The notes under the pieces: generated by a model | What the model saw: the letters and a program-made list of their open reading frames with translations, nothing else | What the model was told of the DNA's origin: nothing | The model's database searches: none | Shown: piece by piece, positions 6,250-58,609 of the stretch | Layout: each line of letters begins with the position of its first letter | How positions within the stretch are numbered: the stretch's first letter is position 1 | Made by a program: the position numbers and the translations under genes | Assembly: GCF_964204865.1 (NCBI RefSeq) | Contig: NC_135252.1 | Location: 8,308,001-8,372,000 of the forward strand | DNA: 64,000 bases | Reading direction: 5' to 3' | From: Styela clava | Lineage: Eukaryota

Positions 6250-6746
6250 ATCTTTTTGTATTTTATGATATTTCTCGAAATTTAAAAATACGAACGAATG
6301 CACTTCACTGTTCGACTGACCGACAAGCGCGTTCGATGTGGAATGAACGCTGAATGCCGCAGCAGGCTATGTCACGTGTGCAAACGCAAACAAATATAAT
6401 AGAGAAGTTGCAGCTCAGTTCTACAGGGGTGGTAGCACAAAAGTCATATTGGGGGTGTCGTCCGAGGTCTATATCCAAGTCTCAATGGCCACTTGATAAT
6501 GATATACTGTATTTGAAGTGTTCTTTGTGTAAATGGTAATACAAGATATGATCACCCCATCCAACTGCTCAAGCTCAACAATAATATCATGATATTGAAC
6601 TTAAGATAGAAATGTGTTTATGACCTAGCCACCTAAAATCGAAATCTCACGTCGTCTGTGATGTCATAAAAGTGACTTGGATCTTTGATTACGTCAGAAC
6701 ACAGGTTGGCAATTTAAATGAGAGCTGCTGTTTCCGTAGTGCGAAA

Positions 6747-18020: not shown

Positions 18021-19019
18021 CTACGGTATTAAATTCTGCTTTTTTGGTGAAAGTCTGGAAAATATTTGGTTGCCTTGAGAATCTTGAGTGAAGCGAACAG
18101 ATAAGTCGTATAGGTGTGGAGACTGTGGCTGATAATCATTGAAATCTGAGACGCTTTTTGGTTTGTCGGACTTCGGCGAGTTCAAGGGGATTTGAGTTGA
18201 GGTTTGCAATAGGCTGAAATATGCCTGCTGTGAAACAGTGTGATCATTTAAAATCGTAATGTTAGGCCTCACTACATTGGGTGTACACTCTGAAGAATCG
18301 TGGAAGGAATTATTCATAATCATTTGTGAATTTCCAGAGATTTGCGTGGAAGTTTGTAACGGTTTGAATGACATCCAATCTGGCGTATCGTCCAGAATAT
18401 CGATTTTTTCATATTGTGTGGAATTTTCAGGGAGATTTATTTGGCCAGAGCTTTCATTGCAAGTACTATCGAATGACAGTTTGCTAGAATTCTTGGACGA
18501 ATTTGATGATTGGGACGGTTTGCTAGGAAAATCTAAGCACTGGGAATGTTCAACTTGCACATTCACTTCCCTAATCGGTTTCGTGTTAGAGTGTGTTTGC
18601 TTTCCTGATATCACTGCATTCAAGCTATATTGTGTAGGATGTTCAGGGAGATTTAGTTGGCCAGAGCTTTCATTGACTTCATTATCGAACGACAGTTTGT
18701 TAGAGTTCTTGGGCGAATTTGATAATTGGGATGGTTTGCTGGGAAAATCTAAACACTGGGAATGTTCAACTTGCACATTCACTTCTTTCATTGGTCTGGT
18801 GTTAAAATGTGTCTGTGACGTCACTGCATTCAAGATATTTATGTCAGTGACAACTGCATTCTCCTTATCCTCACTCTCTGAATATAAATCTTTATGTGAT
18901 GTGAGTTTACCCTGACGACTCTTTGCAAAAGATAATATTGATTGCTGATTAATTTTTTTTCTATTGTATTTCTGTTTAAATACATTTCTTGTAATCTTCA
19001 CATCAAGCTTCCTTGGGTT
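18021..19019 (-). CDS. Probable terminal coding exon of an unidentified gene; Ser/Asn/Gln-rich, low complexity, with a 73-aa internal duplication
   Basis: A 1-kb open frame in AT-rich DNA is preceded by a strong acceptor (tttttttttctgttcgcag at 19020-19038) in phase 0. There is no ATG at its 5' end. Confidence 0.55.
   Translation of the reverse strand, partial: NPRKLDVKITRNVFKQKYNRKKINQQSILSFAKSRQGKLTSHKDLYSESEDKENAVVTDINILNAVTSQTHFNTRPMKEVNVQVEHSQCLDFPSKPSQLSNSPKNSNKLSFDNEVNESSGQLNLPEHPTQYSLNAVISGKQTHSNTKPIREVNVQVEHSQCLDFPSKPSQSSNSSKNSSKLSFDSTCNESSGQINLPENSTQYEKIDILDDTPDWMSFKPLQTSTQISGNSQMIMNNSFHDSSECTPNVVRPNITILNDHTVSQQAYFSLLQTSTQIPLNSPKSDKPKSVSDFNDYQPQSPHLYDLSVRFTQDSQGNQIFSRLSPKKQNLIP
18410..18835. 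repeat. In-frame tandem duplication (~219 nt) within the orphan exon
   Basis: EVNVQVEHSQCLDFPSKPSQ...KLSFD...NESSGQ.NLPE..TQY occurs twice. Confidence 0.9.
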
Positions 19020-27300: not shown

Positions 27301-30300
27301 ACCGATATCGACATACCGATATCTACAACCTGAACCCGCAGTAAATACAAATAGAACAAAAAAAAATTCAGTTTCAGTCAATCAAAAGTTTATGTTGAAA
27401 AATAAAGCAGTCCTACAAAGTGCTTGCATCATTGATAAAAGTTTCACAGCAATTAATAAGAACACACATTAATGCACAAAACAGAAGGCAAAGTTTGAAA
27501 AAACCAAGCACAAGAGAAAAAGGGCAATCAGTAAAAAGCTTATAGAAGTCCATTTTGATCCATACAGTAGTAGGTGGGGACTAGGCTTGCACGTAATTTA
27601 GGGAATTACGTAATTCTTTCGAGTTACGGCAAGGAAGTTACAAATTACGTAAAGTCGCCACCCCGTTTGAGTGTTTGGTTTCACGATCAAAACGATATTA
27701 TTATGAGCGTTATCACCGTAACGCAATTAACACCGACAGACTTTTTTGTCTTCACGATTTGGTATCTTTTTTATTCCGCGCTGATAACGATAAATAGGAA
27801 TGTGTGATAGTTGATTGTAATTCCGGAAGGTGTATTTATCTCTCCGTGAAACAGAAATTAAACGAATTTTACCGCCGCTATGGAGCAAAGGGAGAGAAGG
27901 CTACTTTCTTTTCCCGACTCAATCACTTTTATTAATACAAATTACAGCACATTAAAAAACAAAATAGAATTTATTATCATTAATTTACAACGAGTTACGA
28001 GTAAGAATTTACCGCCGGCTAAATAATTATTATGTGATCTAAATTTATCGCAAATGTTATAACATTTAGGCCGCGAAAGGATTTGATATAAAATGAAGCT
28101 TGGTAATCGGAATATCGTCAATAATTCAGCATCAATAATTTTTGCAAAATGCTAACTAGGTAGCAAAGTCGGATAATGTAAAAAACAGATCAATAACAGG
28201 TCTTCGTTGCGAGGCAAGCGCAGGTATAATCAAACGAAAGAATACGCTCGTCGTTGATTAATAACTTGGAAACCCGAAATTTTTATTCAATACGAAAGTC
28301 GATTTTAAAAAAGGCAACTATTGTTTCATAAATATCCGTATACCAGTGTTGGTAATGATAAAATTGATCGCATAAAATTGGGACGGTTAATTTGCGAAAG
28401 TGATAAAGGAAAATCAAATCAAAAGATAAAAATCAGAATAAATTTAATTTGAATTCACTCCTTGGTATTTGTCTTTAACATCTGTCGCCGGCGTGTAGTA
28501 CTGTCGGTGATATGAAAACCAAACTTCGATGTCCCATTTGGAAAAGAAGTGGATTCAATTGGTTGTTATGATAGGTTTAAATGCGTGAAAAAATATCGCA
28601 ATTACGGGGTCATTACGTAATCGATTTTTTTCCGTAATTACGGAATTGATTTTTGTCGATTACGTGCAAGTCTAGTGGGGACGCAAGATATTCGAAGGCG
28701 AGGATTTTGCGCCGCACGAAGAGATAAAAGAGAGAACTCTCTGTTCATTGAGAGGCAAAATGAGAGAAGCGAAAAAAAGAAAAAGCTCGGCCGCAGATAT
28801 TTCCCGGGGGACTCATTTTTTAGAACGTGGAAAAGCGACTAACGCTGATATATATCGGCAAACACGCAATATCGGCCCGATATATCGGTTGGCCGATATA
28901 TCGGTAGAGCTCTCAAGAACTATAATATGGATACTTAAAACAATTTTACACCATTTATAATAGGTTCTTGATTATTCAAATTGTTTATATAAATAATAAT
29001 ACATCTAAGCATTTGGATATGCCATTTCATGATCTTGAAATGGTAATTGTATGCTTTGGATAATTTAATTATGGCCATAATACAATACAGATACCTAGGT
29101 AAATACAATAGAGAACATCTAAAACAAGTTGGAAACAAATTGAATTTTTTCGAAAGTAGAGTATTTTTTTTTATTAGTAGTTACCATCAGGTTTATATTT
29201 TCTCTCAATGTCATCCCAAGCACAATCCATGATTCGTTGTTTGATCAAACTTTCAAGATCTTTAGTGTGTTCTTCTGTTATATCAATAGGAGGTCGAGCA
29301 ACATGATCGAATTGAACCATTTCTTGCAGTAAACTATTTTCTGGTCTTGATGCAGCTTTGACTTCCCCTGTATCGCAAAATAATAAGATCAATAAATTAT
29401 GTAACTGAAATGAATATTTCACCAATCTAACTTAAGATGTCATAATCACAGATAATCAAGTAACAGTTGGTAAGAAAAAGTCAGCTAGAGCTCTCTTTAC
29501 GATACAAGCTTAGAAAAATGCACATAACGCATTCACCTAAAAATAGCTGACCACTAAAATGGAGGCCAGGGTTAGCTAAAACAAACTCCCAGTACTTCAC
29601 ATTCCAAATGGGTTCTTATTAAGGAATACTCGGTGCTAATTTGGTATATGATCTCAGTGATTTTAGTTGAAGTTAGAAACTGAATTCTATGAGAATTTCT
29701 TTATGAGACTGACCAAAAAGGCACCATGATTAGTGCTGTGCGTTAAGCAAGTGAGATTTGCATACCAAAGTGGACAGAATATTCTTTATTATAGAATGAA
29801 TAAAACAGTTTACCAGTCATTTGCCACTCTGCAGGTGCCAATGCTCTTTCCTCTAGTATTCCAATTTTCTGTGATATTTGTTTCTGATGCTTTTCAAAAT
29901 GAGATTGTTTTTGATCTTGTGCATTGTTTCTATCATCAATTTCAGTCTCAGAAATATTTTCATTTCTATTTTTTATTGAACTAATAGGTTCATCAAAATA
30001 ATCAGAATATTTCAAGTTTCTTGATGATTTAATCTTGCTTGAATATTCTTCATTCTCATCTTCAGATGAGGAAATGCCATCAGATGGAATATCTTCAAAA
30101 TAGTCTATGTCGCCCTCTACCGGCTTCTTTTGTTCTAATTCATATTTTCGATCTTCGTCTTCTAAGAATTTTTCCATTTTACGCAGACTGAAAAAATCAT
30201 CGTCCACTTCAGTCTGCTCCGTTACTACATCATGTTGATTGAAGTCTTCTTCTTCTTCTTCAGTTTCTTCGTCATCTCCTTCACTTTCTTCAAAATGGAA

Positions 30301-31173
30301 TCCTTCCACGTCGCTTTCCGCTAAATATATTCAATTTTGATTGTTAAATTTTCTTGATATCAGTTTGACTTTTAATACAGTTACAAATAAGAATTTGAAC
30401 AACATTGAGATGAAAACCAAAGGTGAGCCTAGCACTATAACTGTTTGCAGTGGTCTCTGGCAACCTTTATAATCATGATCTCTCAATTTTAAGTTTGGTC
30501 TTTGCTTGGGACTTATATTATAGAAAATATACATCGAACCCCTCTCAAACAAATGCATATTTCAATATCTTCCAGCTGTACAAATTAGAATTATGGAGAA
30601 TATTTTGTGCTGGACAACAGAATATAATAAAATCATACCTCCACTAGTCATGTATAGTAAATAGTATTGTAATCATTGATATTAAAAATATAAATTACCT
30701 GATGAATCAGTATTGTATTATATATATATAGGCTACAAAGTAAAAAGTGTAAAACGAATAAAAATAATGAACCAATCACCTTCTGGTTCCGCTTCTCCTT
30801 CAACAGGTTCTAATTCTGACAAATCATCATCTTCATCACCCGTTTCATCATCACTTTCATGTTTCTTTAACATGAACTGGGAAATGTCCTGAGAATTAAA
30901 ATATTCGGCTGCTTTAAGACAAGTTGCAGCTTCCTTCTTATTGAAAAGTTCAATTTCTTGCCAAATCTGCTCATGATCAAAACCTTCAATGATAAGTTTT
31001 GGTATTGGACCTGATCGTGATGAAATTGCTGATGATTTATTAGAATCATAAATCGTCTTTGATAATAATTTAAAATTGTCTGACACTTCTGTACATCCTT
31101 CCAAAAATGGCAAAGGTGAGGATACGAATTGCTCAAAGTTTGATTTCAATTTTGTGAAAAAGTGTTCATCCAT
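24317..31173 (-). CDS. MPHOSPH10: U3 snoRNP protein Mpp10. Exons ~31173-30780, 30320-29814, 29367-29185, 27037-26805, 26250-26062, 24717-24586, 24412-24317
   Basis: LIIEGFDHEQIWQEIEL, VDDDFFSLRKMEKFLE, SHFEKHQ, WQMTGEV..ASRPENSLL, IKQRI...WDDIERK, SKLTLSEIYEKEY, LFRKLDALSNFHF, NLPSIAKEEVQP, LAPEEIF and LTSQKFFSELQD. Phases are consistent. Confidence 0.95.
26388..26612. mobile_element. Foldback/MITE-like element with telomere-like TTAGGG arms
   Basis: Inverted arms atgtgcaagaagatgg / ccatcttgttgcacat and caggttagggttaggcc / ggcctaaccctaacctg. A related half-copy lies at ~55950-56010. Confidence 0.65.
27232..28913. mobile_element. Non-autonomous hAT DNA transposon (outer element, interrupted by a nested insertion)
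   Basis: TIRs agagctcgaccgatat / atatcggtagagctct (1 mismatch), ccgata subterminal repeats, and flanking direct repeat caagaact (27224-27231, 28914-28921). Confidence 0.85.
27582..28674. mobile_element. Nested non-autonomous hAT element
   Basis: TIRs taggcttgcacgtaat / attacgtgcaagtcta, perfect 8-bp TSD gtggggac (27574-27581, 28675-28682), and attacg subterminal repeats. Confidence 0.9.
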
Positions 31174-36678: not shown

Positions 36679-39600
36679 TTATGTTGACGAAATCGATCCA
36701 GAAGCTGAAAAAAGAATTCATGTTATTTGCCACTTTTTGAAAACAACTCTAAAGAATATACTTGAAAAATGCCGCTTTTTAAACATATCTTACATCCAAT
36801 GCTTCCTGTGCCATTGAAACCAGTAGCAGTTTTTGGTGCAGCTGTTTCATTGAAGTTTAGTTTTTCATCGTATATCTTCACATCACCTCCACCTGCTATA
36901 TGATCAGCATTCTCCAATGATCCCACCTTTGAAAGAAAACAACTAATATTGGGAAGAACTGCACGAATTAGGGAGATGGCTAAAATTTGCCAAAAAAAGC
37001 CAGATGTATGCATCACTTGGTTAGACTTGTTGAATTCATATGGAATTTTAATACAGCATTGTCACCAGCAAACTTAATCATGTATCCAGGCATTCTTCGA
37101 CTGTGCCGCTATCCGTATACCCACCACAGATGTCAAATTTCGAGCGCTTTTTACTAGGACTTGGTTAGTTCAACCTTCGAATAGGTTAAGATGAATTTTC
37201 ATTCAGCTCAGAATTGCATTGCAAGCATCTCCTGCACTCAAATACTCAAAACAATAAAGTGATTCAACACAAGTTGTATACCTTTGATTTTGCAGTATCT
37301 TTGAACAGAGGTTTTTCATCAAAGATTTGTACATCTCCTCCACCAGCAATATGATCCGCATTATCTAACGAACCACATTTTGATTTAACGTTTGTCAAAT
37401 CGAGCGTCTTGCTGACAATTTTAACCTAAAATTTAAAAAAATACATATTGGGAGAAAACCATCACATTGACAAAACAGTGAAGATTAGCAAAATAAATTA
37501 TTTTCTGAAGAATACAGATTGATTTTGACATACCGGTAATTTCCGCACCCAACTCTATATATCTTGCAAGCCTTTTTCCTATCAAACAAAGAGATTTACC
37601 TTTCCTCCGCCAGGTGTGTGTGTTAGATTGTCCTTGCTTCCAACTTTCGACTGCACCTTGCTGGTGTCAATTTTTTCATGATGTATTTTGACCTAAAGGA
37701 AAAAAAATAGAAGCCGGTTTTAAAACTAGTTTTGACAGCAAACACTAAAGATACAGTTGCTGCTTTCTTCATGGTGCAATGTCTATAATGCAAACAATAT
37801 ATCACATCCAATTTGTGCATAATGTTTCGTGCTTGAAGTTAACTCCAAATTAAAGATCCACCTGTATATATTAAATGATTATTTACTACCGCTATGCATA
37901 GCTAGGAACACCAGCATGAGAAACACAATGACCTAAAATTGATTCATACCAGCAAGATGACATTACGCAATTTTATCATAAAAATATTATTTTACTTGAT
38001 GATGACAGAATAGTAAAAAAAAAGTGACACTATTGCGAAATATATTTGCATAGGCATAAGTATATGAAATAAAGAAGAGCAAGAGATTGAAAATCATTTA
38101 TGATGAGCAACAATCAGATAGAACGCAAAGGAAGAGATTACATAAATGAGCAATGTTTGAAGAATAATGTTTCAAATATTTCATTAATATTTGAAACAAT
38201 AATCACCCCCTAAAGTTTATGTTAGTACTAGAGATGTACCGATACCACTTTTGTCGCCGATACCGATACCGATCCGATACCAGCTAAAAAAGCCGATATA
38301 AATATTACTTAATTAGGTGTGCTGTGTAGGGCAGACGGGTTAAAACAATAGTCTTTGAGCGTTGTTCATAGAACACATTATTTCAGATCGAAATAAAGAT
38401 ATATCACATAATATGAAATTAATGTTTGGTGTTTGCTTTAACTGATTAAGATACACTGTACAGTAACGCTAGTAATCTCGGCCGGGATGTCCAATTTGAA
38501 TTTAATGTTAATATCGCGACCTTCGAATATCGTTATTCGTGTTTAAAAGAATATCAAATATCACCCACACATTCTAGAGCCGCCGTCCTACGTTCGAATT
38601 AAAAGCATTTTTCAAATATTTTATTTCGTGGCTAATCGTAATCGTCGACGCAATAAGTCAAAGCCAACATGAAAGAATATCAATCAGCACCGACCAAAAG
38701 AAGGCCTACATATAACCGTCGAGGATGTTTTCTTACTTTACTATTTTATATTATTATACAATTGCCATCATATATTTTGAGACAGTCTAGGACTCTAGGC
38801 CCTCTGGGGCTAGGCGGTCATGTCAATATATCTATAAAGAAATTGTGTAGTTAAACAAAATTAATATCTGCGTAGAGGGATAATTGTGTCGGAATTTAGT
38901 TTATCGATGTCGTCGGACTAAATGACACTCGTACTTGACGACAAACAGTCAGAATTTATACCCGTGCCAAAAGTCCATGTGCCGTTAATAAGGACCCCAA
39001 TTCCACTGTATGATTTAAAACTGGGCGCCTAATTGCTTTTTGTTATGTGCCGTGTTGATATATTTCTTCATAATTACTATGTAATATTAAAAATGTCAAT
39101 ATAAAAATTTGACAGCGAAAATAGCTAAAAATACGTGAATCCTATTCTCTCGCGGGGGTAGGGACATGTATGGCTCATAGCTCACGATCTCTCCAGACAA
39201 AAAATAAATTAAAAAGTAGTATTCCAACTTATCTTTTAAAACATTCTGGACCATATCAAAAAGGTAAATATATCGGAAATATCGGCCTTAATCTAACCGA
39301 TACCGATACATGGCCGATACCGAAAAAATGGCCGATATTGCCGATACCGATACCCGATACATCGGTACATCTCTAGTTAGTACTTATTACTTAACATTTA
39401 TTAATCAATATCTATTGTATTGAAAAAAGACAAACTAACAAAATAACATTATGTCTTCGGAAGCAAACTGATGAATGTCGCATAGAAGACACTTACCTAA
39501 TAAATAATTTTCAGATAAAAAAATATTTATTTCTGAGAATTTATTATAGACTTTGAATATTTAAAAACCCATTTTGAAAAAATGTGTTCGCCAAGGAATA

Positions 39601-42600
39601 CTGTAATCGTCTGTATGATAAACAATCATTAGACTTAACAAAAACATGATGACTAGACGACGACAAATGAATACAACGACAATCAAACCTTCCCACCACC
39701 AGGAGTGTGGTTAACATTATGAAGACTTCCAACTCTTCCAGAAACGTTGTCAAACTTTGATTTTTTGTTGAATATCTTCACCTGGTTTCATCCAAAAGAA
39801 GTAATGTCATCATTGTTTGATTGTAATCTTTACTTATCCATAATATCAGAAATATTCAGAGCATTGTTATACATGCTGAGATTAGTCACTTCAAGCAGTT
39901 GAATACAGAAGAGAAAAGAGCTTTTCAGGCACATCCACAAGATGTTGGAAATTTGAAGACAAATAGAGAAGAGACTGGAAATTCAACAATACAACAAATC
40001 TCCATAAGACATCACATATCTTTACAAAAGGCGAACTAAATTGCGAATAGAACTGCATTTGGCAAGACGAATACAAAAAGGAGGAATATCATACTGTTCC
40101 ACAAAACATGCATTTTCAGGCATAACATTAAATAAAGTTGGGTTAGGAAAGCCTCACAAAACGAGTTAAAGTTTTTGCAAACAACAAAGACTGATTATCC
40201 GTCATGCCATGTTAAAGATGAGTTGACATTGTTTCAGTTTCTTTACTCTTCAAATCCTATTGTTGGTCGTCAAAGTAGAATTATGACAAGAAAATGACCT
40301 TTTAGAAAATACCTGAGAAGATAGATATAGGCCTGAACAACACATTGTCAAAACTTTTAACTTTCGATGTGATTCCTTCATAGTTGGAACGTCGTCTTTT
40401 TTTGACTGTCACCTTTTACAAGCACCAGGTTTAAATATTGAAGATGATTGAAAGGCGATTCTTTCAGTTTCAGAACTGACAACTACCAAATACCAAAGGT
40501 AATAAATGCAAGTCGCACAAGTAAATTCAACAAAACAGCAACTATGAATAACATCTATTCAATACAAGAATAATGATTGCAGTGCGGAGGTTTTAACACC
40601 AGCATGCATTCTGTTGTTACTATAAGCAGCCCAGCGAGATGAAAAGCTATACAACCAACATGAAAATACCAACGTAATAGTCTTTTGTACATATCTCCCT
40701 TTTACCAAATTTCCAGAATCAAAATAAAACAGCTTATTGAAAATAAAAATATTTAAAATAACTGAAATATGCTTGAAAATTTGTCTCATTAACTTCGGTG
40801 TAAATGGTTGGTGCTGATAATTAAATAGATATCATATGATCGACATCACGGAAGAAAACAGTCATACATTTAGATTTTAAACCCTATCTTCTCCAGTGAC
40901 ACTAATCCAGCACTTTTACTGATTAAGAAATTAGGTCACTTACCAAAATGTTTAGTTTGAGAACTTCAGAAATAATAGTACCATTACTAAATCAACAAAA
41001 ATTGATAGTATAAATTGTAAACAATATATTATAAATTTACAGAAAAAATAAATTTGATAAATGACTACAGTCACATTACAAATCATTATTAAACACCATA
41101 CACTCTTTACAGTCACACCAACAATGGTCACACACACCCAAACACAAATCATGCTAATGCTATAAATCTGACACAACTTACATTTCCACCTTGTGCTGTA
41201 TGTTTCATGTTGTCTTTTGATCCACATTTAGATGTGACATTACTGAAGTCTAATTTCTTGCTTTCAACTTTGACCTTGAAATCATCAAAATAATCATGAT
41301 TACGAATTACAATGTGAATCACATTGAGGATAATTACTAATGTATTAGTTAGTGTAATACTGTTAGTTTTGACGACATCATCGATGGAAAGTAATATGTC
41401 TGATTTGCATCTAATGTCACATCCAATAAAATTCATCCACAAATTAAAAATCAGGACGATGAAGTCTTGTGTAGCAACAACAGCTATTGGCACCAGGTTT
41501 AAAGAAATTTTGACTTCAACCCTAAAAAAAAAATTTTTTTGACTACAGAAACTCTGGCGTATTATAAACTTTTAGACTTCAGGCTCAGCACTATATCAAA
41601 TGAACTGATTGATGTAAACCGAACCCAATCATATTCAAATCTGACAAATCAAAAAAAAAATGTCCAAACCACAAACATGATGTTTATGAAGTGAAAGAGG
41701 GAACATTCATACCATAACCATCCCATGGAAAATACTTCCCAAAAATTCTAGGCATAGGAGCTGTACAAAGACGATGACACTCAAGCTTTAAGCCACTACC
41801 TTTCCACCTCCAGGAGTATGAGTTAAGTTGTTGAAGGTACCACATTTGGAACTGACATGGCTCAAGTCCAATTTCTTGTGCTCAATTTTCACCTGTTAGC
41901 AAAACAGACATTGGCAAACAGACATTCTTCATTGATTGATGTTCTTATTCTTAACCTGTCTTTCTATAAAGCTATTCTAAGCAATATTCATATTATTTAC
42001 TAATAGAGATAAATTACCTTTCCTCCACCAGGTGTATGAGTTGTGTTAGACAAGGATCCACATTTTGATCCAACATTGCTGAAATCCAGTTTCTTGTTTT
42101 CAATTTTTACCTGGTTGATTATGAAAATTGCTTTAATCGCATGAACTTAGTAACATAAATCTTGATACTACGAACATAAGAGCAATGCTTTAACGTACGG
42201 TAAGGAGGGTCAAATAACTGATAGATCAACACAATATCAGCAAGACTACAGCCAAATGTCAGAAAATTGAAATAAAATTTATGATCCTAACACTAACAAC
42301 AACACACTTTCCACTTCATGTTTAAAAGCAACAAAATCAATCAAATCACCTTTCCTCCACCAGGAGTATGTGATGTATTCGACAATGATCCACATTTGGA
42401 TCCAACATTCTTGTAATCCAACTTCTTATTCTCAATTTTGATCTGCGAAAACAGATGAAAGATAAATTTTTATATAGGTAATAATAATAATCAACAAAAG
42501 TGCCCTATATTCGGGGCGTGAACAATTTTTTGGGAGGCATGGAGCTAATTAAAAATAAACAAATTTGTTAGATTTGATCCTGCTCGTCTTATTTTGGATA

Positions 42601-45600
42601 TTTACTTTTCTTTATTGTTTACACTTCTTTTTTATGTACACATATTTTCAACCTGTTTTTTGAATAGAACAGACTTTCGCCTTACTATATGTTATTTGTG
42701 GCTTATTGTTAGCTAGTTATTTTTGAGGTGAGGGGGGGGGGGAAGCTTGACAAATTCTAAAAAAGGAACGTGGCTCGAAAAGTTTGAAAACCACTGATCT
42801 AAACAATATATCATAGATTCTTTTCTTGCATATTTCATTACTACGTCTCTGGCAGTCAGGGTAGGTGACAAAAAAATGCATGAATATCCTTAAAAGTATT
42901 GATCGCAAATCTAATCAAGCATATGTAATATAAAATCAATAACTTACTGCACAAAAACGCAATAATTAATCATAATGTGTTTTGTAGAATTCAATGCATT
43001 ATACCATATTGATTAAATTCATTTAGTGCACAGTGCATATCCGCACAATATGTTATGCATTACATTGTAATATATTGTGGAATAACATGAGGAAATAAAA
43101 GAATAACTGCTAGTCTCAAATTTACATATGGTAGATATTGTTGTGCAGAATATTATTGTGTCATGCCAGTTAAACAGGTTTTTGTTGTTTTATTCTGACA
43201 AAATTTTATATGACACAAATTTCATATTGATGTCATCCTCTCTGAATAAGGCTCTGTACAAACTTTCACTTGTATTTAAGAGCTATGGTAGTTACTGATT
43301 AAGCTTAGTAACAAAAATTCATTACTGCAAAAAAAATGTTTAATATTTCCCCTTTAGTTCTTTCAAAAAGTTGAACAAGATTTTTTGTTTTACGGGTAAA
43401 GACATTTATTGATCCCTTGCAAAGATTCACTCCATATACTAGACGCAATAAAATCAAAGAAATTTCAACTTCCAAATTATGAATGAAATAATGATACTCT
43501 ATCTCTGCACTATCTCCTCTTGCCCTGCCTCCTCCCGCTAAATTTCTCAAGTGGCCCAGCTAGATATCAGAAGTTGGTTACATGGCCCACCAACAAAAAA
43601 TGTTGCATACACCTGCTCTAACAGGATAATTTAAGTAAACTCTTATGGTCAAAAATAATGTTTTCTTAGTTCATATTCATATAGCGTTTTATACAGTATT
43701 AGTAATCCCTCTGAAAAAAATACCAGGATACCACGATACAAATGCACTTTGAGATTTTGAGAATATTACTTAACATTGTTAACAAGAAGTAATAAAACAA
43801 ATGTAGCAAAATATTGAAACAATTACCTTTCCCCCAGTTGGTGTGTGATGAATATTGGATTTGGAACCAACTTTGGATGTTACTTTACTGTAATCAACTT
43901 TCTTGTGTTCAATTTTCACCTAAAATATATATTGAATGATCGACTTCGTCATCCGAACTACAAGATTTATCATAGACAGGAATTCACCAAAGCAAAAAGT
44001 GTTACGGAGCCTAGAGATAGTTAAAATTTCAGCAAACCTCTCAAAAAATGGGATTATTTTACAAATTAGGGAAGAATGGACAGAGAGTAAATGCAGAAAA
44101 GGGCAGTTTGAACTAATACTGATATAGATAAAATGTGTAAATGAAAAAATGAGTAGATTTAATAGAACTATTGACTCAAATCAAAATACTGTCGAAATAC
44201 TATTAAATTGTGAAATTAATCATTAAATCAATCATATAGAATTATACACAAATTACCAACATTCAACAATTCGCAACAAAATATTGCTGAAAATAATGTT
44301 GAGAAAGTTAGTTTTATTATTGGGTGTGAGTACTGGAAATTCAAAATAGGAAATCATTTGGTTAATCATTATAAATGATTTAAATTAGTATATTAAATTA
44401 AATAGTTCTGAATAATGTTCACCTTTCCCCCACCAGGAGTGTGTTTAGTATTTTCCATTGAACCGATCTTACTTTTTACATTCTTTGTGTCGGGCATTCT
44501 TGGACGAGGTCTGCCACCGTCTGATGACTAAACAATACATTTAACTATTGTTGAATGATACAGGTGACAGGAACACATAAAGTGGAAAGAGTTGCCTGAC
44601 TAGCACAATGATACGTATATCTAAACAACTACAAACCTGAAAACTATAATGACAAACTGGGACAAATAGTCATGCATATAGCCAAATCTGAAATTTTTTC
44701 ATTGTATATATCAACATTGTTCAAACAATATTCAGCTCAGAAAGGTAACAGAATGAAGCTTGGTGGTGCGGCGCATCGCGCTAAGCGTTAGGAATATGTT
44801 CGCCACCTCTGATTACCCTGCGTGAGTTCGCAGGTTTGAATCCTTTGGGAAATAATTATGTTCAATTGCTGTAGGTTTACATAACTGCTGGTCAGTTGCG
44901 GCTTCCTCCACCAAGTCCATGCATCTGAAACAAATAATTGGCTAACCCCATAGACGACATGGATTGGTAACCGGACTTCGCCAATTAAGTCGTTGTACAG
45001 GCTTCCCATTCCCCCGGGATAAATATGTAAATCCATTCCTATCCCTTTTTAACAATGAATTAAACCAACAACAGTTTTTTATAGAATTCATACCACCATA
45101 AAAACAAATTATTTGAGAAAAAGAATTCATACCTGTGAGCTAGGAGTCCTAGGTGTTCTGGGTGTAATAGATGCTGGGCTTCTAACAGGTGCAGATCTTG
45201 GAGATCTTAGTGCTGGCTATGCATTTGAATAAGAAATTTATTTTAAAAATAAAAAGTCGAAGTCTCGTAAGACAAACATGATGGCCAGTTAAAACTAAAA
45301 CTGTGTTCTAAAATGAACCATTGTAAATATAAACAAACATCTCAACATATTGCCAGGAGTGGATGTATTACAGAATTCACACATCTAAGCAATGCATTCA
45401 AACGCATAACTCTTTTGATTATTTTATTGAAAACTGGAGTTGCAAATCTCAATCGAGATGTAGGTTATTTTCCAGATTAATCTTAGATGGTGATTGCTTG
45501 GAATGTGTGAAACCTCATTCACAAACCTCCATCCTAATTCATGTTCGTAGGATTCATTTTGCTAAATTGTCGTTGCTCTTGGGACAAAAATTATTTTCTG

Positions 45601-48600
45601 TTTTAGGACATCAGGCTATTAACATTCAAATTTACAAATTAGTATTGATGAATTCTAAAAGGCCATCACTCTCATTTCTTGGTAAATTTTCTCCAGGCCC
45701 GCTAGAACCATTTATTTTACCTCAAATTTTCTGATTTTAATAAGGAAGCATCATGCACTCTCATAATAAGGCATAATAGAATTATACAGCATCCTGTACC
45801 TTCAATGGAGTAGTGCTGAGTGAAGGATGATTTTTAGATTGTGTTGGTTTACGTGTTGGAGTGTTAGTACGCAAGGTAGTTGGCTGAAGTGGGGCACGCT
45901 TCTCCCCTGCCGAAGAAGGCTTTGGTGTGGTGCTTGTACCCTGTAAAGTAAATCATACTGTTATAGTAGAATCCCCAGTCATATAAAAACAAATAGACTT
46001 TATCTTATAGTAATCTTCATAGCAATCTTTGGCTATGGTACCTCTATCTACGATCAAAAAATCATTCTAATTGCTAGTTCACATGACTTGCAACCTATTA
46101 GTTTTCCTCAATTAGCCTATAAAATATATACTTTGTACATAAAATCAAATTCCAAATTCAAGGAATAAAAACTTACCTTTGGGGTAATTCTGGTTGTAGT
46201 TGGAGTGCTTCTGGCAGTGTTGTTTTGCTTCACAGGCGATGCAGTATTCAATCTGTTGGACTGAGTAGTATTGTGTCGTTTATTTGTGATGGCAGTAGTG
46301 GTGGTGGCAGCTTTGGCAGAACCAGGTCGACCTGGAGTTGATGATTTTGATTGTGGAGTTGGAATCCTTCTAGGCAAAGAACTTCTCGGTGTTGGTTTGT
46401 TTTGCTTCGGTACAGCTTCGTCTGTGCTTGATGATTGCTAAAAGGCAATAGGTAGATGTCGTATGCTTGTTTAACAATCAGAATTGTTTGTAGTGTACAG
46501 GGCTACAGGCGAACTCACGAAAGCGAGATTGAATCTGCTCCAGATTTTGCATGTGCATTCATCTTATCTCGGACCAGTTATTAGTATATCTTCTAATTAA
46601 TTAAGATGAATTGTTATATTGATATATGGTAATCCACCAATTCATTGTAGCAAATACTCTCTTATATCATTTTCTCAACTAAAAGGGACTTTATCCTTTA
46701 CACAGAGATGCCATTATATTTTCTGATTATTTTTCATTTCAACTTGCAAAATAGATTACCTTTGTTTTTGCTTCTGATGAAATCTTTCCAGTTGCAATAT
46801 GATTATTTGAATATTCTGAAAAACGTTGGAAAATATATAAGTTATTTATCTTGAAAACATGTGTAGCGTTTTTGAATAACAATCTTCAATTATCTAAGCT
46901 CATCTTCATAATAATGGCTAGTTACAAAAAATCCAATATAATAAATGAAAAACGAGTACTAGAATGTACATGTACATGTACATGCAATAAAAAATTGTCA
47001 ATTATAGAGTATTATGGTCTTTCCTGTCTAATTTGAACAAATTTCATTAAAAACAGACTAAACAACTTACTGGTACTCCCTTATTTTTGGTTCTGTGTAA
47101 TATACCAAATTAGCTAAATTAAAATCATTGGCAGCATACGCTTGGCCATTGTCATATTATAGAGCCATTTGCTTTCCAATATCATTTAATCATACATTGA
47201 AACACCACCGCTTTTCCTAACAAGTACTAGTATGTACATGTACATATAACAAAAAATTGTCACTTATAGAGTATTATGGTCTTCCCTGTCTTATCTGAAC
47301 AAATTCCATTGAAAACAGGCAGTAGGAACAACATACTCCTTTATTTTTGGTTCCGTGTAATATACTTGATTAACTTAATTAAAATCACACACAGGGATTG
47401 CTTCAACAATGACCCGTAAGACTTGCATCCTTTCAAGAAATGTGTTTTTGCAACGGCGGGCACAAACCAAAGTATAAAGAAATCTTACGTTTGACCTAGA
47501 AGTCATGAATAATTTATAGAAACTCGCCAAGACAAAACAACCTTCTCTAATGTGAAATTGTTTCATAGGTTTTGAATGGAACATCGTCCCACGGGCACTC
47601 AATGTTTGCAAGACTAAAATAGCTACGGTTCAAAATATTTCACAGAAAACGAAAAATTGGGGATTCCCTTTATAAACAACTGGCATTCATGTAATTCATA
47701 ATAAATAAAATCACAATAATTCAAAATTCCATATTTAATCTTCTGTAATAAAAAATTTCCAGTTTCACACATCTTTATTTACGTACCTTCCTCGCCAACA
47801 AATTAACATGTAACATGAACGATCCCGAAAATAACAATTTTCAACTTGTTACGAGTTACGTGTGTGTTCCATTTTATATACTTCGGGGGAGTTATAAGAT
47901 GTGTTTTTATAGCATGACAACATCTTGACTGGACGTTAGACGCCTGCGGACGCGTTTCCAACAACAGAATAATATACATGTCATAACAATGGACATCATA
48001 ATAGCATTGTCCACTTCTTAAATGGGATTCGCAAAATCCTACCAACAATAAAATAACGCCCCGTTTCCCTGTCCACAATTCACTTGTGGACAAGTCGATA
48101 TCCGGTTGAGATGGCGACGAACGGTGAAATAGCCGAAATGGTGTCGTAAATTGTAAAAAAAAAATTATAGGACCAGTTATAGACACTTTTTTATTAGAAA
48201 CGGTGAATTTACGGTCATTTTTGAGAAAATTTATTATTTGACAATAGTACTAGTAGATTTTTATTTCGGCTGCGGGCTTGTGACTTACAATTACAAAATT
48301 GCTCCGGACGTAGCCTATATTTTCCCGGATTGACTAAACCAGGTACACTAGGTTTCAAGAAACTATTCTAAAGACCTAATGCGCAAATTAATATTTGCTG
48401 ACGTGATATACCAAACGAGAAAAACCCGATCAAAAACAACATACGTTGACGTTATGCGCAATTTCAGCTCTAGTGTATAGTTTAACTAAGAAAAATCTCC
48501 TTTACAAAGGCACTTTTTTGTGTATAGATCATATCAATCCTAATGACGCAGTCCTGCACACTACAATGCTATCGCTAACAATTCAATAGTCTTAAATTTA

Positions 48601-51600: not shown

Positions 51601-54566
51601 ATATAGATTTCACTGGAACCATCTCACCTTTTTCAATTTTTTCAAAGGAACTGGCAAAATAAGATTTTTCTTTACAATCACCACGAATCAATATGATATT
51701 AACCTGGCGATGTACTTGAATGCAAGATCCCATCCAATATGCTTACAAGAAAAACACTTACTTTCAGCCAAAACATGAAATCCATTCAAAAATAAATTAT
51801 TTAACACTGGATGGAAAAAGACATGTGTACAAGTGAGTCGGAAGAGTAGTACTCGTCTAGTAGATACATCAGTATGATTGAAATACCTCATTTGTGAAAC
51901 CACACAGAAGATTTGCTCAATAAGTGATACAGGAAAATAAAAACCAAATGAATGTTATTAGTATTAAAAATGCAATATTGGGAAAAATAGGTTTAAATAC
52001 AGCTTTTCAAACCTACAGTACTTTAAACTGAGTTATATTTATAAGAGAAATTTAAACAAATCAATGCATGTTTGACGCATAAATGCAGAAAAGGACTTCA
52101 ATTATCCAGCGTTGCCCAGTTTTTTTTGTTTTTGTTCTATATTAAAATATTTTGAATTATTATTTTATAAATGTTAAATAACTGAATTTCAAATCAGCCT
52201 CATTCCCAACAAACTAAAGTGATTGCCAACATCCCATTTGACTATATCGTATTACAATACCAAATGTAACTGAAAATAATTCCCCGTAATGATCTAAAAT
52301 CAATGCTGAAGCATTCAATCATGCTTCACAAAAATATATCTGTAAAAATTTAGCATATTCACAATATGATGTCCTATGGTATGATATGGTACATGCCACT
52401 AATCCTGCAATACATAAAAAAAAAGGGGATCTTTTCAGTGTTGAATAAAAAGCTTCAGGCTCGCTGCAAATGTAAAATTCATGTTGACTATATATAAAAC
52501 CAAAAACTAAATACACCTCTAACAGAACCACAATATTTCTGCACTGGTTTCAAACAGAATGTCACAAAATGTTTTAGAGACATTCCCATTTCCATCATGG
52601 CATGGTAATTTCAGTGATGGATCTAACTACTTGGCCTACATAGATTTAGGATGTCAAGCCCAAAAACCATACCCACCGCTTCACCCAACGTGTATTAAAA
52701 TGGTTAAAAAATGATAAAAAAAATTTGAAAAAATCATGATGAATGATGAAAACAACTCTCACCAGTTTTTGATGAATAAGAAGCCCCTTCTATTAATAAT
52801 TTCTTTTTTTGTTGTTCTTCTATAACCATTGATCGAAATTCTTCTTCCATCTTCTTGGATATGGACACCATTTCATTGTGCGATAATTCCTAGAATAATT
52901 TCTTTGTAATTTCTATCGTTTAAATTTGCACAACAACTTCATGAAATATTTATGATTTTAAATATGCCACTGATCATGTTAATTAACAAAATAAATCGGT
53001 AATTAAAGCTTAATGTAAGTTTCTGTTTATGAAATATGAAGCAAAAATCAACTAGACACACCTTATTTGGTGTACTTTCCTGAGCCGATGCCAACATATC
53101 AGCAATGATTTTCTCTTTTTCAGTTTCAGTTGGACTGGCTTCAGCATTATTTGTGTCCGATGGTGTGTGGGAATCAGAATCAACATGATTAGTCTGTTCC
53201 AAATTCATATCTCCAGTTGCAGTATCATTTTTCTTATCAAAATCCTGAACAATGACAATTAAAGCAACATTCATAAATTTTTAGTTGAATAAAATAACAT
53301 TGAGCCGTAAAGATATCAAACTATAAAAACATCTCACTCACTAAAATCATATCTTTAATAATTGAAGGGTAGGCTAATATATCTAATAGCGGAAAAGACA
53401 TTTTATTATGCACTAAGGCACAGAAGAAGGATATCTATACCTAATAACTAGTTGTTCCAAAATCAATAGTGGTACGCAGCAGCATTTGGATATCTTTCAA
53501 AATTGTTACACTGATACATACACCATCCAATAAGTGAAAGCAAATTAGGAATAGTTAGCCTTTTAGAGCCCAAATCCACATAAACTATATTAATTACCTG
53601 GCTTTTTTCTCCTATCGAATTTGAATCCGGAAAAGCCTGAATTGAACCTAGATATTTAAGTCACAGAATTATTAGGAAAAATAATGAAAGTAAAAATTCC
53701 GTGAACTATGCAATTAGTAATGATTGTTTAGGATCATTATCACATCTTTACAAGAATATTAGAACCTTTTTTTTCAATTTTCAAATACATGATTCAATCC
53801 CCGGCTTCATTGTGGTATAAAATATAAATTTGTAAATGAGGCAAAAAATTTAGTGAATAACTGATAAAAAACTGGCATCATAGAAACTTTTGCCATCCAA
53901 AATTTGTCAAAATCACATAATGCTTCGCAAGAGAGCATTAAAAACATGAAAAGATATGTATAAAATCAAATTTACTGATTATTCATTAAAAGTGATTCAA
54001 CTCAAGAACTAAAGAGATAACATCGAAGAAACAATATACTAGAAATGCATGCGCAGAAAAAATTATTTTTTTATCACTATCACCGAATTTGGCACAAGTA
54101 ACCTAAATGAACTTCATTCAACTAATACTGTAATATCTAGTATTGAATAATATTGCATGTTGCATCCAATAAAAATACAATTAGACTGACCATCAAATCC
54201 ATTTTCAATAACAGATTCTTTGTTTTTACATTCTGTTGAATTTCCATCACATTGGATAAGGTTATCAGATTGTGCTACATCTTGAAGCTCTTTCAAAATA
54301 TCACTTTCAAAATTGGTGATATTTTTTCCACTATTTTCAACAGATTTCATTTGCATTTGATTGAAATATTCATCGACTATTCCTTCTGATGAATTTGTAA
54401 AGAAGTCATGTGCAGCAGTTGCATTATATTGGAAGTTTTCTCGACTGGGTGAATTGTACGGAGAGATAAAAGTGTCATCAACCTGCAACGATGCATCTCC
54501 ATTATCTACATTGCCATCAACTTTGTTGATTTGGCCGTTAGTATGTAATTCATCCATGACTTCCAT
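36679..54566 (-). CDS. Tau/MAP2/MAP4-family microtubule-associated protein with about 10 repeats. Exons ~54566-54191, 53647-53598, 53244-53062, 52889-52763, 46815-46760, 46437-46177, 45940-45800, 45216-45133, 44527-44423, 43919-43827, 42442-42350, 42110-42018, 41892-41800, 41274-41182, 39781-39689, 37692-37600, 37425-37282, 36926-36794, 36704-36679
   Basis: Acidic N-terminal exons are followed by Pro/Thr/Ser/Arg-rich exons, then [25 protein letters not shown] (cf. tau R1) and nine further KxGS...H..GGG repeats. An R'-like [13 protein letters not shown] segment and a short Ser/Gly tail follow. Joining the N-terminal exons across the 6-kb intron is inferred from phase compatibility. Confidence 0.9.
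38229..39375. mobile_element. Non-autonomous hAT element in a Tau/MAP-gene intron
   Basis: Perfect 15-bp TIRs tagagatgtaccgat / atcggtacatctcta, perfect 8-bp TSD gttagtac, and ccgata subterminal arrays. Confidence 0.92.
44761..45045 (+). mobile_element. Same SINE family, in a Tau/MAP-gene intron
   Basis: ggcgcatcgcgctaagcgttaggaat ... cgggataaatatgtaaatcc. Confidence 0.8.
46514..46577 (+). repeat. Internal fragment of the DINE-1/Helentron-like family
   Basis: cacgaaagcgagattgaatctgctccagattttgcatgtgcattcatcttatctcggaccag is identical to 55435-55496. Confidence 0.8.
46955..47370. repeat. Diverged ~150-bp direct duplication in an intron
   Basis: gtactag.atgtacatgtacat...attatggtct..cctgtct...ttatttttggttc.gtgtaatatac at ~46955 and ~47223. 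Confidence 0.8.
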
Positions 54567-55358
54567 GACCCGATGCCTGTGAGAAGTTCGTCCACAATCT
54601 GACAATTAAAAAATAGACTACGGTACGGTCTGACGGTAGCAAACTCTTAGATCAGTATATCTGAAAATTAACGAGGAATATACAGATACGGTACCTATCA
54701 CCGTACTCCCGAAGAGTATAGATACAAACACCATAATTACGGTACCGGTAACATGGCGATTGTAAATGATCCAATTTTTATTAAAACTCCTCAAATGCAG
54801 AAATGTCTCAATGCGTTAAAAACACAATACCGCAAAGCGTAGATCAGGAAAACCCTCATACTGAATATACCATAATGCTCACCGATGCTCACTACACCTG
54901 TGTATGAAAACAAAGTTTACTCTCTTTTGCCTCTAGTGTCGATAAAATATTAAGCATTGGTAGAGTTTTGCATTATTTTTGCTTCGCCAGCAAGCATTCA
55001 TTTCCTTTCCCTTTTTTTTCCCATTTTTGTTTGAAATTAATGTAATCTTGAGATTTATATTATTTAAACTGTGTACCGGTGTTTTAAAATTCATCATATA
55101 ATACCGCCTAATTATTCATACTTACTCGAATATCCCTGTGGTGTCGCGATTGGGTCACGGAAGGCAAAGTGACTATAACACTTTGACGGAAGGCCAAAGC
55201 AGAGACAACGCGTGACATTCTTATTAGCGTCGGTCGGCGAGTGCGGAGGCGCGAAAGCTAGTTTTGAATTGCTATCCCTCAAACCGCTCTTATCGTTACA
55301 TTATCAAGTTTTCTAGGAGTTATTTTAGGATATGGACTTTTATTCATTTTAACTCTAG

Positions 55359-56848: not shown

Positions 56849-58609
56849 ATGAAGGTCAAACCAAATATTTATGTAAAAACTGCTCCTCAAGAAGATGAAA
56901 GTAATCCACCAAGTGCTGACAAGAATCCATATAGAAAAGCGCGCCGGACGACAGAAATTTGGCTACCAGAAGCAAGTACTGCATTCAAGTTTTTCATGTC
57001 TGCAAATCTTGCCTCCGCTCTTTTGAGTAATATATCTGACTGTGATGAGACTTTCAACTATTGGGAACCTTTGCATTACCTTATGTACGGAAACGGTTTT
57101 CAAACTTGGGAATATTCACCAGCTTATGCAATACGATCATGGTCTTATATTAGACTGCATTCTATTCTGACTTGGGCCCACTTGAACTTGTTCAATTCAA
57201 ACAAGTTGCTTGTGTTTTATTTTATTCGGGCTATGCTAGCACTGTTTTGCTCTTTATCAGAGGTACATTTTTACAAAGGTGTTGCATTAATGTTTGGGGG
57301 TAATGTTGCTCGCATGCTCTTGGTATTTCTTACCTTTGGTTCTGGTATGTTTATATCTGCTGTTGCATTTTTGCCGAGCAGTTTTTGTATGTATATGACA
57401 TTTCTAACATTTGGTTCATGGATGCAGGGGCAGTTACACTTTGCTGTTCTATCTGTGGCAGCTGGTGCTATAATAGGTTGGCCTTTCTCAGCTGCATTAG
57501 GAATTCCACTTGCGATAGATATTCTTCTGCGAAGGCGTAGTTATTTTCAGTTCGCAAAATGGTGCTTTGTTGCTTTAGTGACTATGCTGCTACCTTGTAT
57601 GGCAATAGATTCTTATTATTATGGAAAACCTGTTATAGCTTCTTTGAATATTGTTCATTATAATGTATTTACACAACATGGACCAGATATTTATGGGGTA
57701 CAGCCATTGTCATACTATTTACTAAATGGGTTTCTCAATTTTAATTTGGCTTTCATATTAGCCATATTAAGTGGTGGCATTGTTTTTATTTCTGAACTGT
57801 TGATCATGTTGAAAATCAAGGGGTACAAGCCGGCATATATTATTTTTCTATTGTTTTTGACCCCAATGTATATTTGGGTCATGATTTTTTTCAGTCAGCC
57901 ACATAAAGAAGAAAGATTTCTTTTCCCAATTTATCCTTTGATTTGTCTGTCCGCATCAATTGCAGTAGCTACTGTTCAAAAATTATATTGCGTATTTAAA
58001 CTGCATGACTATCTAGATTCTAGATGGATGTCCCTGTCAACACTAGGAATTTACATCATATTATCGCTCTCGCGATCAATAGCATTATTCCAAGCTTATC
58101 ATGCACCTTTGGAAGTATATCCGAGTTTAATGATGGTTTCTGAAAATCGAAATTATGAGCATCCAAATATGCGCGTCTGTGTTGGGAAGGAGTGGTATCG
58201 TTATCCATCAAGCTTTTTTCTGCCTGCTAATTTTAGTATGGAATTTATCCAATCCGATTTTCGAGCTCAACTGCCCAGTCACTTTGTTGGCTTGCCTCCG
58301 GAGGGTTCAAGGCATATTCCGACTGATATGAATGATGCAAATCTGGAGGAAACTTCTAGATATGTTGACAGCGAGTCTTGTCACTTTCTTGTTGATTTGT
58401 CAATTTCAAAATACTCAATTAATGAACCAAATTATGCACTGCATTCCAAAAATTGGAAACTTCTGAAATCTGTAGCTTTTCTTGATGTTTCACAGTCGCA
58501 TAATAAAATATTTAGAGCTTTTTATATTCCTTATATTTTTGAGACCAGAAACCAATTTGGAAATTATGTTTTGCTTCAATCAAAGAAAAACAAGTTGCCA
58601 GAAAAGTGA
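56849..58609 (+). CDS. ALG9: Alpha-1,2-mannosyltransferase ALG9, intronless CDS, 586 aa
   Basis: ISDCDETFNYWEPLHYL, GFQTWEYSPAYAIRSW, AFLPSSF, GWPF, QPHKEERFLFPIYP, VCVGKEWYRYPSSFFLP and CHFLVD. Confidence 0.97.
   Translation: MKVKPNIYVKTAPQEDESNPPSADKNPYRKARRTTEIWLPEASTAFKFFMSANLASALLSNISDCDETFNYWEPLHYLMYGNGFQTWEYSPAYAIRSWSYIRLHSILTWAHLNLFNSNKLLVFYFIRAMLALFCSLSEVHFYKGVALMFGGNVARMLLVFLTFGSGMFISAVAFLPSSFCMYMTFLTFGSWMQGQLHFAVLSVAAGAIIGWPFSAALGIPLAIDILLRRRSYFQFAKWCFVALVTMLLPCMAIDSYYYGKPVIASLNIVHYNVFTQHGPDIYGVQPLSYYLLNGFLNFNLAFILAILSGGIVFISELLIMLKIKGYKPAYIIFLLFLTPMYIWVMIFFSQPHKEERFLFPIYPLICLSASIAVATVQKLYCVFKLHDYLDSRWMSLSTLGIYIILSLSRSIALFQAYHAPLEVYPSLMMVSENRNYEHPNMRVCVGKEWYRYPSSFFLPANFSMEFIQSDFRAQLPSHFVGLPPEGSRHIPTDMNDANLEETSRYVDSESCHFLVDLSISKYSINEPNYALHSKNWKLLKSVAFLDVSQSHNKIFRAFYIPYIFETRNQFGNYVLLQSKKNKLPEK

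Follow-up and report, generated by a model that had tools for sequence, protein, structure and literature searches.

The tau family of vertebrates consists of MAPT, MAP2 and MAP4, three genes that arose later than their pre-duplication pro-ortholog (PMC4815063), and in MAPT it is exon 10 that decides between the 3R and 4R forms (PMC8395099). An original prediction for the Styela clava locus described here, made from a 64-kb window (the whole stretch of DNA analysed, 64,000 nucleotides), took 3–5 repeats as the ceiling for the family. That ceiling does not hold, being exceeded in zebrafish mapta, which has 4R and 6R isoforms (PMC8395099) and for which 8 units were counted in one protein, in Notothenia tau, which has seven repeats (PMC4815063), in mollusc MAPs, which have 7–10 repeats with ten in Crassostrea gigas (PMC8985376), and in ascidians, sea urchin and brachiopod. 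Public protein sets contain 9–13 repeats in other ascidians, sea urchin, brachiopod and gastropods; in particular, the Crassostrea gigas MAP (PMC8985376), Lytechinus pictus MAP2-like, Lingula anatina tau, and proteins of Nucella, Haliotis and Mercenaria resemble the Styela gene in carrying 9–13 PF00418 repeats per protein. Among invertebrates, arrays of many repeats are a common feature of this family. The arrays of the other phyla differ from that of Styela in unit length, which in many cases is 30 or 32 residues instead of 31, and the expansions look independent. RefSeq models of Clavelina, Haliotis and Lingula differ by whole repeats, those of Haliotis and Lingula forming isoform series with 30-residue steps inside the array. 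The published mollusc account deals with repeat number only, without splicing (PMC8985376), and no account of splicing in the many-repeat relatives seems to have been published.

The ascidian ortholog is represented by Clavelina lepadiformis LOC143466172 (XP_076820920-26; UniProt A0ABP0F1N7, 'Microtubule-associated protein'). The Styela gene shares with it a run of 31-residue repeats and an end formed by a split repeat and a pseudo-repeat, preceded by a candidate acidic N-terminus with common motifs and a candidate basic Pro/Ser/Thr-rich region. What distinguishes the Clavelina RefSeq isoforms is the loss of exactly one or two repeats of 31 residues, the modelled cassettes being units 2, 9 and 10. 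Clavelina differs in having 12 repeats, compared with 10 here, and a duplicated pair of its own (units 5 and 7), and its models contain no counterpart of the R5-skipping form described below. With 11 repeats in a second ascidian assembly and 9 in Ciona savignyi, about ten repeats is the documented norm in this lineage (9–12 in other ascidians), an outcome that the original prediction itself had named as one that would reduce its novelty.

Our analysis indicates that the locus is very likely the sole tau/MAP2/MAP4-family gene of this ascidian, occupying the minus strand of the window between ~54.6 kb and 36.68 kb, with a C-terminal ten-repeat region that is transcribed and spliced as predicted, with at least R5 and R7 as cassettes, and with an array that is mostly ancestral. 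A Pfam profile search with PF00418 matches all ten units, in agreement with the predicted family membership and repeat number. Specifically, nine units score 42–69 bits against a curated cut-off of 27, while the tenth is a split repeat, the second half of which scores 22.8 bits against the same cut-off; the units are tandem tubulin-binding repeats of ~31 residues with a Gly-rich end. The nine matches, which are ordered on the same strand with E-values of 1e-11 to 1e-19 and are all accompanied by splice signals, are not due to chance. Microtubule binding and stabilisation via the repeats are predicted from membership of the family. A six-frame search with a profile of the repeats did not reveal further credible units in the 64-kb window. 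Its weak hit at 40341–40391 (profile E 0.057) was considered as an extra degenerate repeat and rejected, the frame being hemmed by stops and lacking exon context.

Sequence searches were performed with single exons, or an alignment of single exons, as queries. A genome scan, the counts of which are lower bounds, found no PF00418 match outside the locus in the 377-Mb assembly; all matches fall in the locus, indicating that the gene is single-copy and the only one of its family in the genome of this non-vertebrate chordate. The ascidian placement comes from the N-terminal motifs of the tau gene, which match ascidian proteins, and from ALG9, for which the closest named relatives are those of Ciona, Phallusia and Clavelina, with vertebrates behind. 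When the closest ascidian protein was used as query, no annotated protein from the window was recovered, and no public full-length model was found. The gene is apparently unannotated, and adds an example to a known many-repeat type.

Upstream of the repeats, open stretches of matching composition follow one another in the order of the family layout, with approximate exon ends, and ascidian orthologs can be aligned with two of them in their N-terminal portions. A candidate N-terminal exon, which would encode the acidic projection domain (54210–54554, minus strand, as are all features below), sits inside the open stretch 54117–54605 and was located by tblastn with two ascidian orthologs, P0002 and, from Ciona savignyi, P0180, with which it has a short N-terminal motif in common. 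A conserved internal exon with approximate ends (52776–52889), upstream of the proline-rich region, is 63% identical to P0002 and 40–41% identical to the orthologs of Clavelina and Ciona savignyi. Just 5′ of R1, the candidate exons of the proline-rich region (45785–46437) comprise six-frame open segments rich in Pro, Ser, Thr, Lys and Arg (46120–46437 and 45785–45952), proposed from their composition and their position ahead of the repeats, which match the family layout.

The repeat region begins with R1 (44423–44527), a 105-nt phase-0 exon that encodes the end of the basic region and a partial first repeat (PF00418 45.9 bits, profile positions 9–31), and a hint of its expression comes from loose contig ends that resemble this exon. 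R1 is followed by seven 93-nt exons, each symmetric (phase 0/0) and carrying one repeat, with translations exactly as originally claimed: R2 (43827–43919, 61.6 bits), R3 (42350–42442, 61.3 bits), R4 (42018–42110, 66.5 bits), R5 (41800–41892, 55.6 bits), R6 (41182–41274, 68.7 bits), R7 (39689–39781, 42.4 bits, the weakest full repeat) and R8 (37600–37692, 62.8 bits). The ends of R3–R8 are confirmed by RNA joints. The 144-nt R9 exon (37282–37425, 55.4 bits) encodes a full repeat and the first half of R10, while the 133-nt R10 exon (36794–36926) encodes the second half of R10 and a C-terminal half-repeat, the pseudo-repeat, and has a phase 1 end. On the minus strand, AG precedes and GT follows each of the ten exons as acceptor and donor, and the seven 93-nt exons, R1 and R9 are multiples of three and open in frame 0 only. 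The terminal coding piece (36679–36704), read from the sequence, comprises eight codons completed across the predicted junction, followed by the stop TAA at 36679–36681; its start is corrected from 36703 to 36704. The 3′ UTR extends downstream of the stop, with contigs reaching at least 700 nt past 36794.

To follow the splicing of the array, we used public RNA contigs (Logan) from four runs (X1, X2, X5 and X9) of three studies, in which joints were covered from R3 through R10. The run type was taken as RNA from the spliced joints, the index label being a guess; the contigs drop rare variants and do not phase exons. Contig depth is ~10x higher in exons than in introns. Joints with GT..AG ends at the exact predicted coordinates connect R3–R4, R4–R5, R5–R6, R6–R7, R7–R8, R8–R9 and R9–R10. 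In particular, the joints of R4 to R3 (42110 to 42350) and to R5, of R8 to R9, and of R9 to R10 (36926 to 37282) are present in 4/4 runs; R6 is found in all runs with joints on both sides, and R8 is joined to R7 or R6 in every run.

The in-frame exon skipping that had been foreseen is observed for two exons. R5 is included in 4/4 runs (joints R4–R5 and R5–R6), and in X1, X2 and X9 (three runs, two studies) it is also skipped, with a direct R4–R6 joint (41274 to 42018) beside the inclusion joints. The skipping joint, the short side of which is 22 nt, with R4 differing from R5 by 3 bases and from R3 by only 2, has a depth similar to that of the inclusion joint, giving a rough skip share of 0.5–0.6. 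R7 is included in X1, X2 and X5 by its joint to R8 and in X1 and X2 by its joint to R6, and is skipped in one run, X9, by an R6–R8 joint (37692 to 41182), with no R7-inclusion joint listed in X9. R7 use may differ by sample, being fully skipped in the sample of one study and included in others. R3, R4, R6, R8, R9 and R10 look constitutive in the four runs. Cassette splicing of the array is real but limited.

The original prediction had gone further, proposing that any subset of the 93-nt exons can be skipped, each as an independent cassette, to give proteins of ~3R to 10R in up to 128 forms. All seven exons are symmetric, so that any skip stays in frame, and R5 and R7 are indeed skipped; Clavelina skips three different units, the Haliotis and Lingula RefSeq models drop from 1 to ~9 repeats in many patterns, and contigs hide rare isoforms. 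However, full independence of the exons is quite improbable: of the six covered by joints (R3–R8), R3, R4, R6 and R8 have inclusion joints only in all four runs from three studies, the joints listed for these runs include no multi-exon skips, and the Clavelina models skip just three of ten units. Splice sites point the same way, those of R6 and R8 being near-consensus, whereas the R5 donor (GTAGTG) is non-consensus and R7, with a purine-rich acceptor and a non-consensus donor (GTTTGA), is among the weaker splice-site pairs. It is also unlikely that the skipped forms are allelic, unequal exchange between repeats having removed the R5 (or R7) exon from some haplotypes of a very polymorphic species, with constitutive splicing of every allele. 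In three runs the joints that skip and include R5 are roughly 50:50 in depth and in the fourth skipping is absent, which is what heterozygous and homozygous individuals would give; in the same intron region a 1.15-kb transposon is present in some copies and absent from others, and the contigs are 1–5% different from the reference. Yet no low-depth intron-to-intron deletion joint is listed around R5 or R7, although the empty site of the transposon was seen at intron depth; the introns flanking the repeats lack the mutual likeness that would promote unequal exchange; and the Clavelina unit that groups with R7 is modelled as a skipped exon from Clavelina's own data. The reading we prefer is thus limited cassette splicing, with both inclusion and skipping in transcripts for R5 and R7.

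A related question is the age of the array, which the original prediction had explained by serial duplication of an exon-10-type module. A young, lineage-specific tandem expansion of one exon, in place of an inherited many-repeat gene, would account for R3 and R4, which are alike at 27/31 residues, are 83% identical in DNA and form a pair in the repeat-level tree, but is very improbable for the array as a whole. The remaining exon pairs have 64–76% DNA identity, a DNA repeat search found no intron similarity between repeat units, and likeness ends at the exon edges. Furthermore, most units pair with positional counterparts in ascidians having 9–12 repeats. The tree has 31 columns and resolves few groups, of which only those with support of ~90 or more were used; in these, the partners of R7, R8 and R9 are the repeats at corresponding positions in Clavelina, Ciona savignyi or a further ascidian, R9 being placed with the next-to-last repeats of other ascidians and R7 with Clavelina unit 9, an annotated cassette. 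R6 falls in no well-supported tree group and has its best Clavelina match by identity in unit 8 (23/31 residues); the best match of R2 by the same measure is unit 2, which is skipped in Clavelina isoform X5. The array thus appears to be mostly inherited from an ascidian ancestor, except for the lineage-specific pair R3/R4. Recent segmental duplication was likewise rejected as an origin, as DNA similarity is confined to exons, the exception being the older R3/R4 pair.

Vertebrate MAPT exon 10, with the analogous cassettes of MAP2 and MAP4, provides the nearest parallel, in that a PF00418 repeat on a skippable, in-frame 93-nt exon sets repeat number (PMC8395099). Vertebrates differ in having one cassette among 3–5 repeats and three paralogous genes, while Styela has one gene with seven such exons and at least two cassettes. 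The exon boundary of MAPT has the same position within the repeat as that of the Styela gene, after the GGG-containing end. The zebrafish repeats form their own clade in the tree, apart from the ascidian units, and the latter are therefore not one-to-one orthologs of MAPT exon 10. Zebrafish mapta (4R/6R) and Caenorhabditis elegans PTL-1 (5R/4R) are similar in that repeat number exceeds four and/or is set by splicing (PMC8395099), but they have fewer repeats, and the teleost expansion is a separate event.

Together, these features suggest how the gene may work. The C-terminal half would constitute the microtubule-binding region, made up of the partial R1, R2–R8 on 93-nt phase-0 exons, R9, the split R10 and the half pseudo-repeat. 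Because at least R5 and R7 are cassette exons, it would be produced in proteins with 8 to 10 repeats, and by analogy with 3R/4R tau the change in repeat number may alter binding strength and the bound length on the microtubule lattice. We tentatively raise the possibility, which we hold to be somewhat less than even, that tuning of repeat number by cassettes is an ancestral, conserved trait of the single chordate tau/MAP2/MAP4 gene, with R7 and Clavelina unit 9 regulated across distant ascidian orders in a tissue- or stage-specific manner; if so, such tuning would be older than the vertebrate 3R/4R switch and a parallel to it.

No living group is closer to the vertebrates than the tunicates, and here one ascidian gene stands where vertebrates have MAPT, MAP2 and MAP4. 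The 3R/4R logic of tau is one case of a wider family habit, and the Styela locus opens no new category; public data already contain relatives with many repeats and isoform models that skip repeats. A ten-repeat ascidian gene with cassette exons offers a simple system for the effects of repeat number on microtubules, in embryos that are transparent and genetically tractable.

Ten exons on the minus strand, R1 to R10 in 5′ to 3′ order, encode the tubulin-binding repeats of a tau/MAP2/MAP4-type gene: 44423–44527 (R1), 43827–43919 (R2), 42350–42442 (R3), 42018–42110 (R4), 41800–41892 (R5), 41182–41274 (R6), 39689–39781 (R7), 37600–37692 (R8), 37282–37425 (R9) and 36794–36926 (R10). On that strand, AG lies directly before and GT directly after each proposed exon. 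The seven 93-nt exons (R2–R8), the 105-nt R1 and the 144-nt R9 have lengths divisible by three and are open in frame 0 only, while R10, of 133 nt, ends in phase 1, and a short terminal piece completes the reading frame, closing with a stop codon at 36679–36681 (minus strand). The translations of the seven 93-nt stretches in the original prediction were reproduced exactly, and the scan it proposed with PF00418 (tau and MAP tubulin-binding repeat) matched each unit of the array. Specifically, in searches made with single exons, nine units score 42–69 bits (curated cut-off, 27 bits), and the tenth repeat is divided between two exons, its second half scoring 22.8 bits. A six-frame search of the whole window, using a profile from the seven exons, recovered these units and nothing else credible. 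The array of about ten repeats built from 93-nt exons is thus borne out, far beyond chance, by translations, AG/GT ends, and PF00418 and profile matches.

Assembled contigs from four public runs of three studies (X1, X2, X5 and X9) were mapped to 36794–42793 (6 kb; R3 to R10), a region chosen because isoforms of Clavelina lepadiformis suggested that the units corresponding to R7 and R8 might be cassettes. The joints, written as the two exon edges made adjacent, reproduce the predicted exon ends with single-base precision, and the removed parts are GT..AG on the minus strand. In particular, R10-R9 (36926/37282), R9-R8 (37425/37600), R6-R5 (41274/41800), R5-R4 (41892/42018) and R4-R3 (42110/42350) are joined in all four runs, R8-R7 (37692/39689) in X1, X2 and X5, and R7-R6 (39781/41182) in X1 and X2. 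Contig depth in exon bins is about ten times that in intron bins, which, together with the spliced joints, shows that the runs are RNA, a type only guessed in the index. Loose ends at 39713 (X1, X2 and X9), where contigs partly on R7 run on into letters matching the R1 exon region (~44446–44468), are R1-bearing transcripts misplaced on a similar repeat and hint at expression of R1.

The joints further show that R5 and R7 are taken into or dropped from transcripts of one ten-repeat gene, yielding proteins of 8–10 repeats. A minus-strand joint leaving out R5 (R6-R4, 41274/42018) is present in X1, X2 and X9 and absent in X5; its short side is 22 nt, R4 being told from R5 by three bases and from R3 by two, and R5 is skipped either way. 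This joint is found beside inclusion joints at similar contig depth, with a rough skip share of 0.5–0.6. A joint leaving out R7 (R8-R6, 37692/41182, minus strand) is present in X9, a run whose listed joints contain none with R7. In-frame repeat skipping, as originally predicted, therefore holds for R5 and R7; for R3, R4, R6 and R8, as for R9 and R10, only inclusion was seen in the four runs, in contigs that lose rare forms and do not phase distant exons. The wider claim of combinatorial splicing, with any subset of the seven exons droppable and up to 128 forms, finds no support in the mapped contigs and is very improbable.

In this highly polymorphic species, the skipped forms could instead represent alleles missing an exon. 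We consider this unlikely, since no intron-level deletion joint is listed, although a transposon polymorphic for presence in the gene did show its empty site, and since Clavelina unit 9, grouped with R7 in the repeat tree, is likewise modelled as skipped. The transposon (38229–39375, R8/R7 intron) is a non-autonomous DNA element of ~1.15 kb bordered by an 8-bp target duplication, GTTAGTAC; its ends, inverted repeats of 17 nt without a mismatch, are hAT-like. Depth over the interior is that of a multi-copy sequence, and the empty site occurs at intron-level depth in X1, X2 and X5, indicating a presence/absence polymorphism of the insertion within the species.

Alternative use of R5 and R7 recalls tau, in which the exon-10 cassette decides between three and four repeats (PMC8395099), and both exons show exon-10-type cassette features. 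By analogy with tau biology, repeat number would govern how strongly, and over what footprint, the lattice is bound. The acceptor of R7 is purine-rich and its donor reads GTTTGA, the R5 donor GTAGTG is non-consensus, and the sites of R6 and R8 are near consensus. The weak R5 and R7 sites appear to agree with which exons get skipped, an agreement that is only suggestive, the donors of R1 and R9 also matching the consensus at just 3/6 positions.

The gene has the tandem PF00418-matching repeats that define the tau/MAP2/MAP4 family, with candidate upstream exons in the order of the family layout, and is apparently a new, unannotated member of this known kind. The top matches of the profile search are an annotated Clavelina protein and an assembly-derived ascidian protein, and Ciona savignyi H2YK32 is another full-length match. 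Counted with one same profile for all species, these have 12, 11 and 9 repeats, respectively; Lytechinus pictus and Lingula anatina have 13 each, Nucella 10, Haliotis and Mercenaria 9 each, zebrafish mapta 8 and two other fish taus 7 each. Published work describes 7–10 repeats in molluscs, including a ten-repeat oyster protein (2022; PMC8985376), and a seven-repeat tau in Notothenia (2016; PMC4815063). About ten repeats is the lineage norm, a finding that the original prediction had said would reduce its novelty. The early-diverging fungi Cetraspora (protein P0009), Rhizopus (P0197) and Gigaspora (P0225) also have proteins with 7–10 PF00418-like repeats, that of Rhizopus fused with other domains, so neither the repeat family nor its occurrence in long arrays is confined to animals.

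Among the six RefSeq isoforms of the Clavelina gene, the differences amount to precisely one or two repeats of 31 residues (units 2, 9 and 10, numbered by repeat), and members of the Haliotis and Lingula isoform series lack between one and about nine repeats, the array shortening by 30 residues at a time. One cassette repeat may be common to distant ascidians. A literature search on the splicing of tau in tunicates yielded no paper, and the presence of cassette repeats in the single tunicate gene is possibly noteworthy.

In a repeat-level tree of poor resolution, R7 and Clavelina unit 9 fall together, R8 joins repeats of the assembly-derived ascidian protein within a wider group holding Ciona savignyi unit 7, and R9 joins the penultimate repeats of the Clavelina and assembly-derived proteins. 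R3 and R4 form a pair specific to the Styela lineage, and all zebrafish units form a separate clade. DNA likeness between units is 64–83% and ends at exon edges. Together, the groupings and the exon-bounded likeness indicate an old array, inherited for the most part and modified by occasional duplications within single lineages, whose expansion was separate from that of the fish arrays.

All PF00418 matches in the 377-Mb assembly (match counts being lower bounds) fall within this locus, indicating that the tau-like gene is single-copy. Upstream of the repeats, two Pro/Ser/Thr/Lys/Arg-rich open stretches (46120–46437 and 45785–45952) and an acidic one (54117–54605), all on the minus strand, have the composition expected for a tau-like protein, and two upstream pieces align with N-terminal parts of ascidian tau-like proteins. 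The gene would therefore extend from ~54.6 kb to 36.68 kb, its upstream exons being candidates.

An MPP10 (U3 snoRNP) homolog is represented by two exons (29743–31173), also on the minus strand and downstream of the tau-like gene. An unbroken 662-residue frame (20383–22371, minus strand), with a weak, below-cut-off match to PF05699 (hAT dimerisation domain), could, judged from sequence, encode a hAT-type transposase, whether intact or domesticated. ALG9 mannosyltransferase (56849–58609, plus strand; 586 residues) and a short-chain dehydrogenase (5509–6303, minus strand; 264 residues) each occupy one uninterrupted reading frame and represent intron-less or retro-copied versions of genes that animals usually carry split by introns. 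The nearest relatives of ALG9 are two assembly-derived proteins (85% and 70% identity), followed by those of Ciona (58%), Phallusia (57%), Clavelina (51%) and vertebrates (about 49%). These ALG9 relatives, like those of the tau-like gene, place the sequence among ascidians. A 326-residue open frame without a Pfam match (18021–19001, minus strand) contains an internal duplication of ~100 residues, and the opposite strand also has a long open frame across the same stretch.
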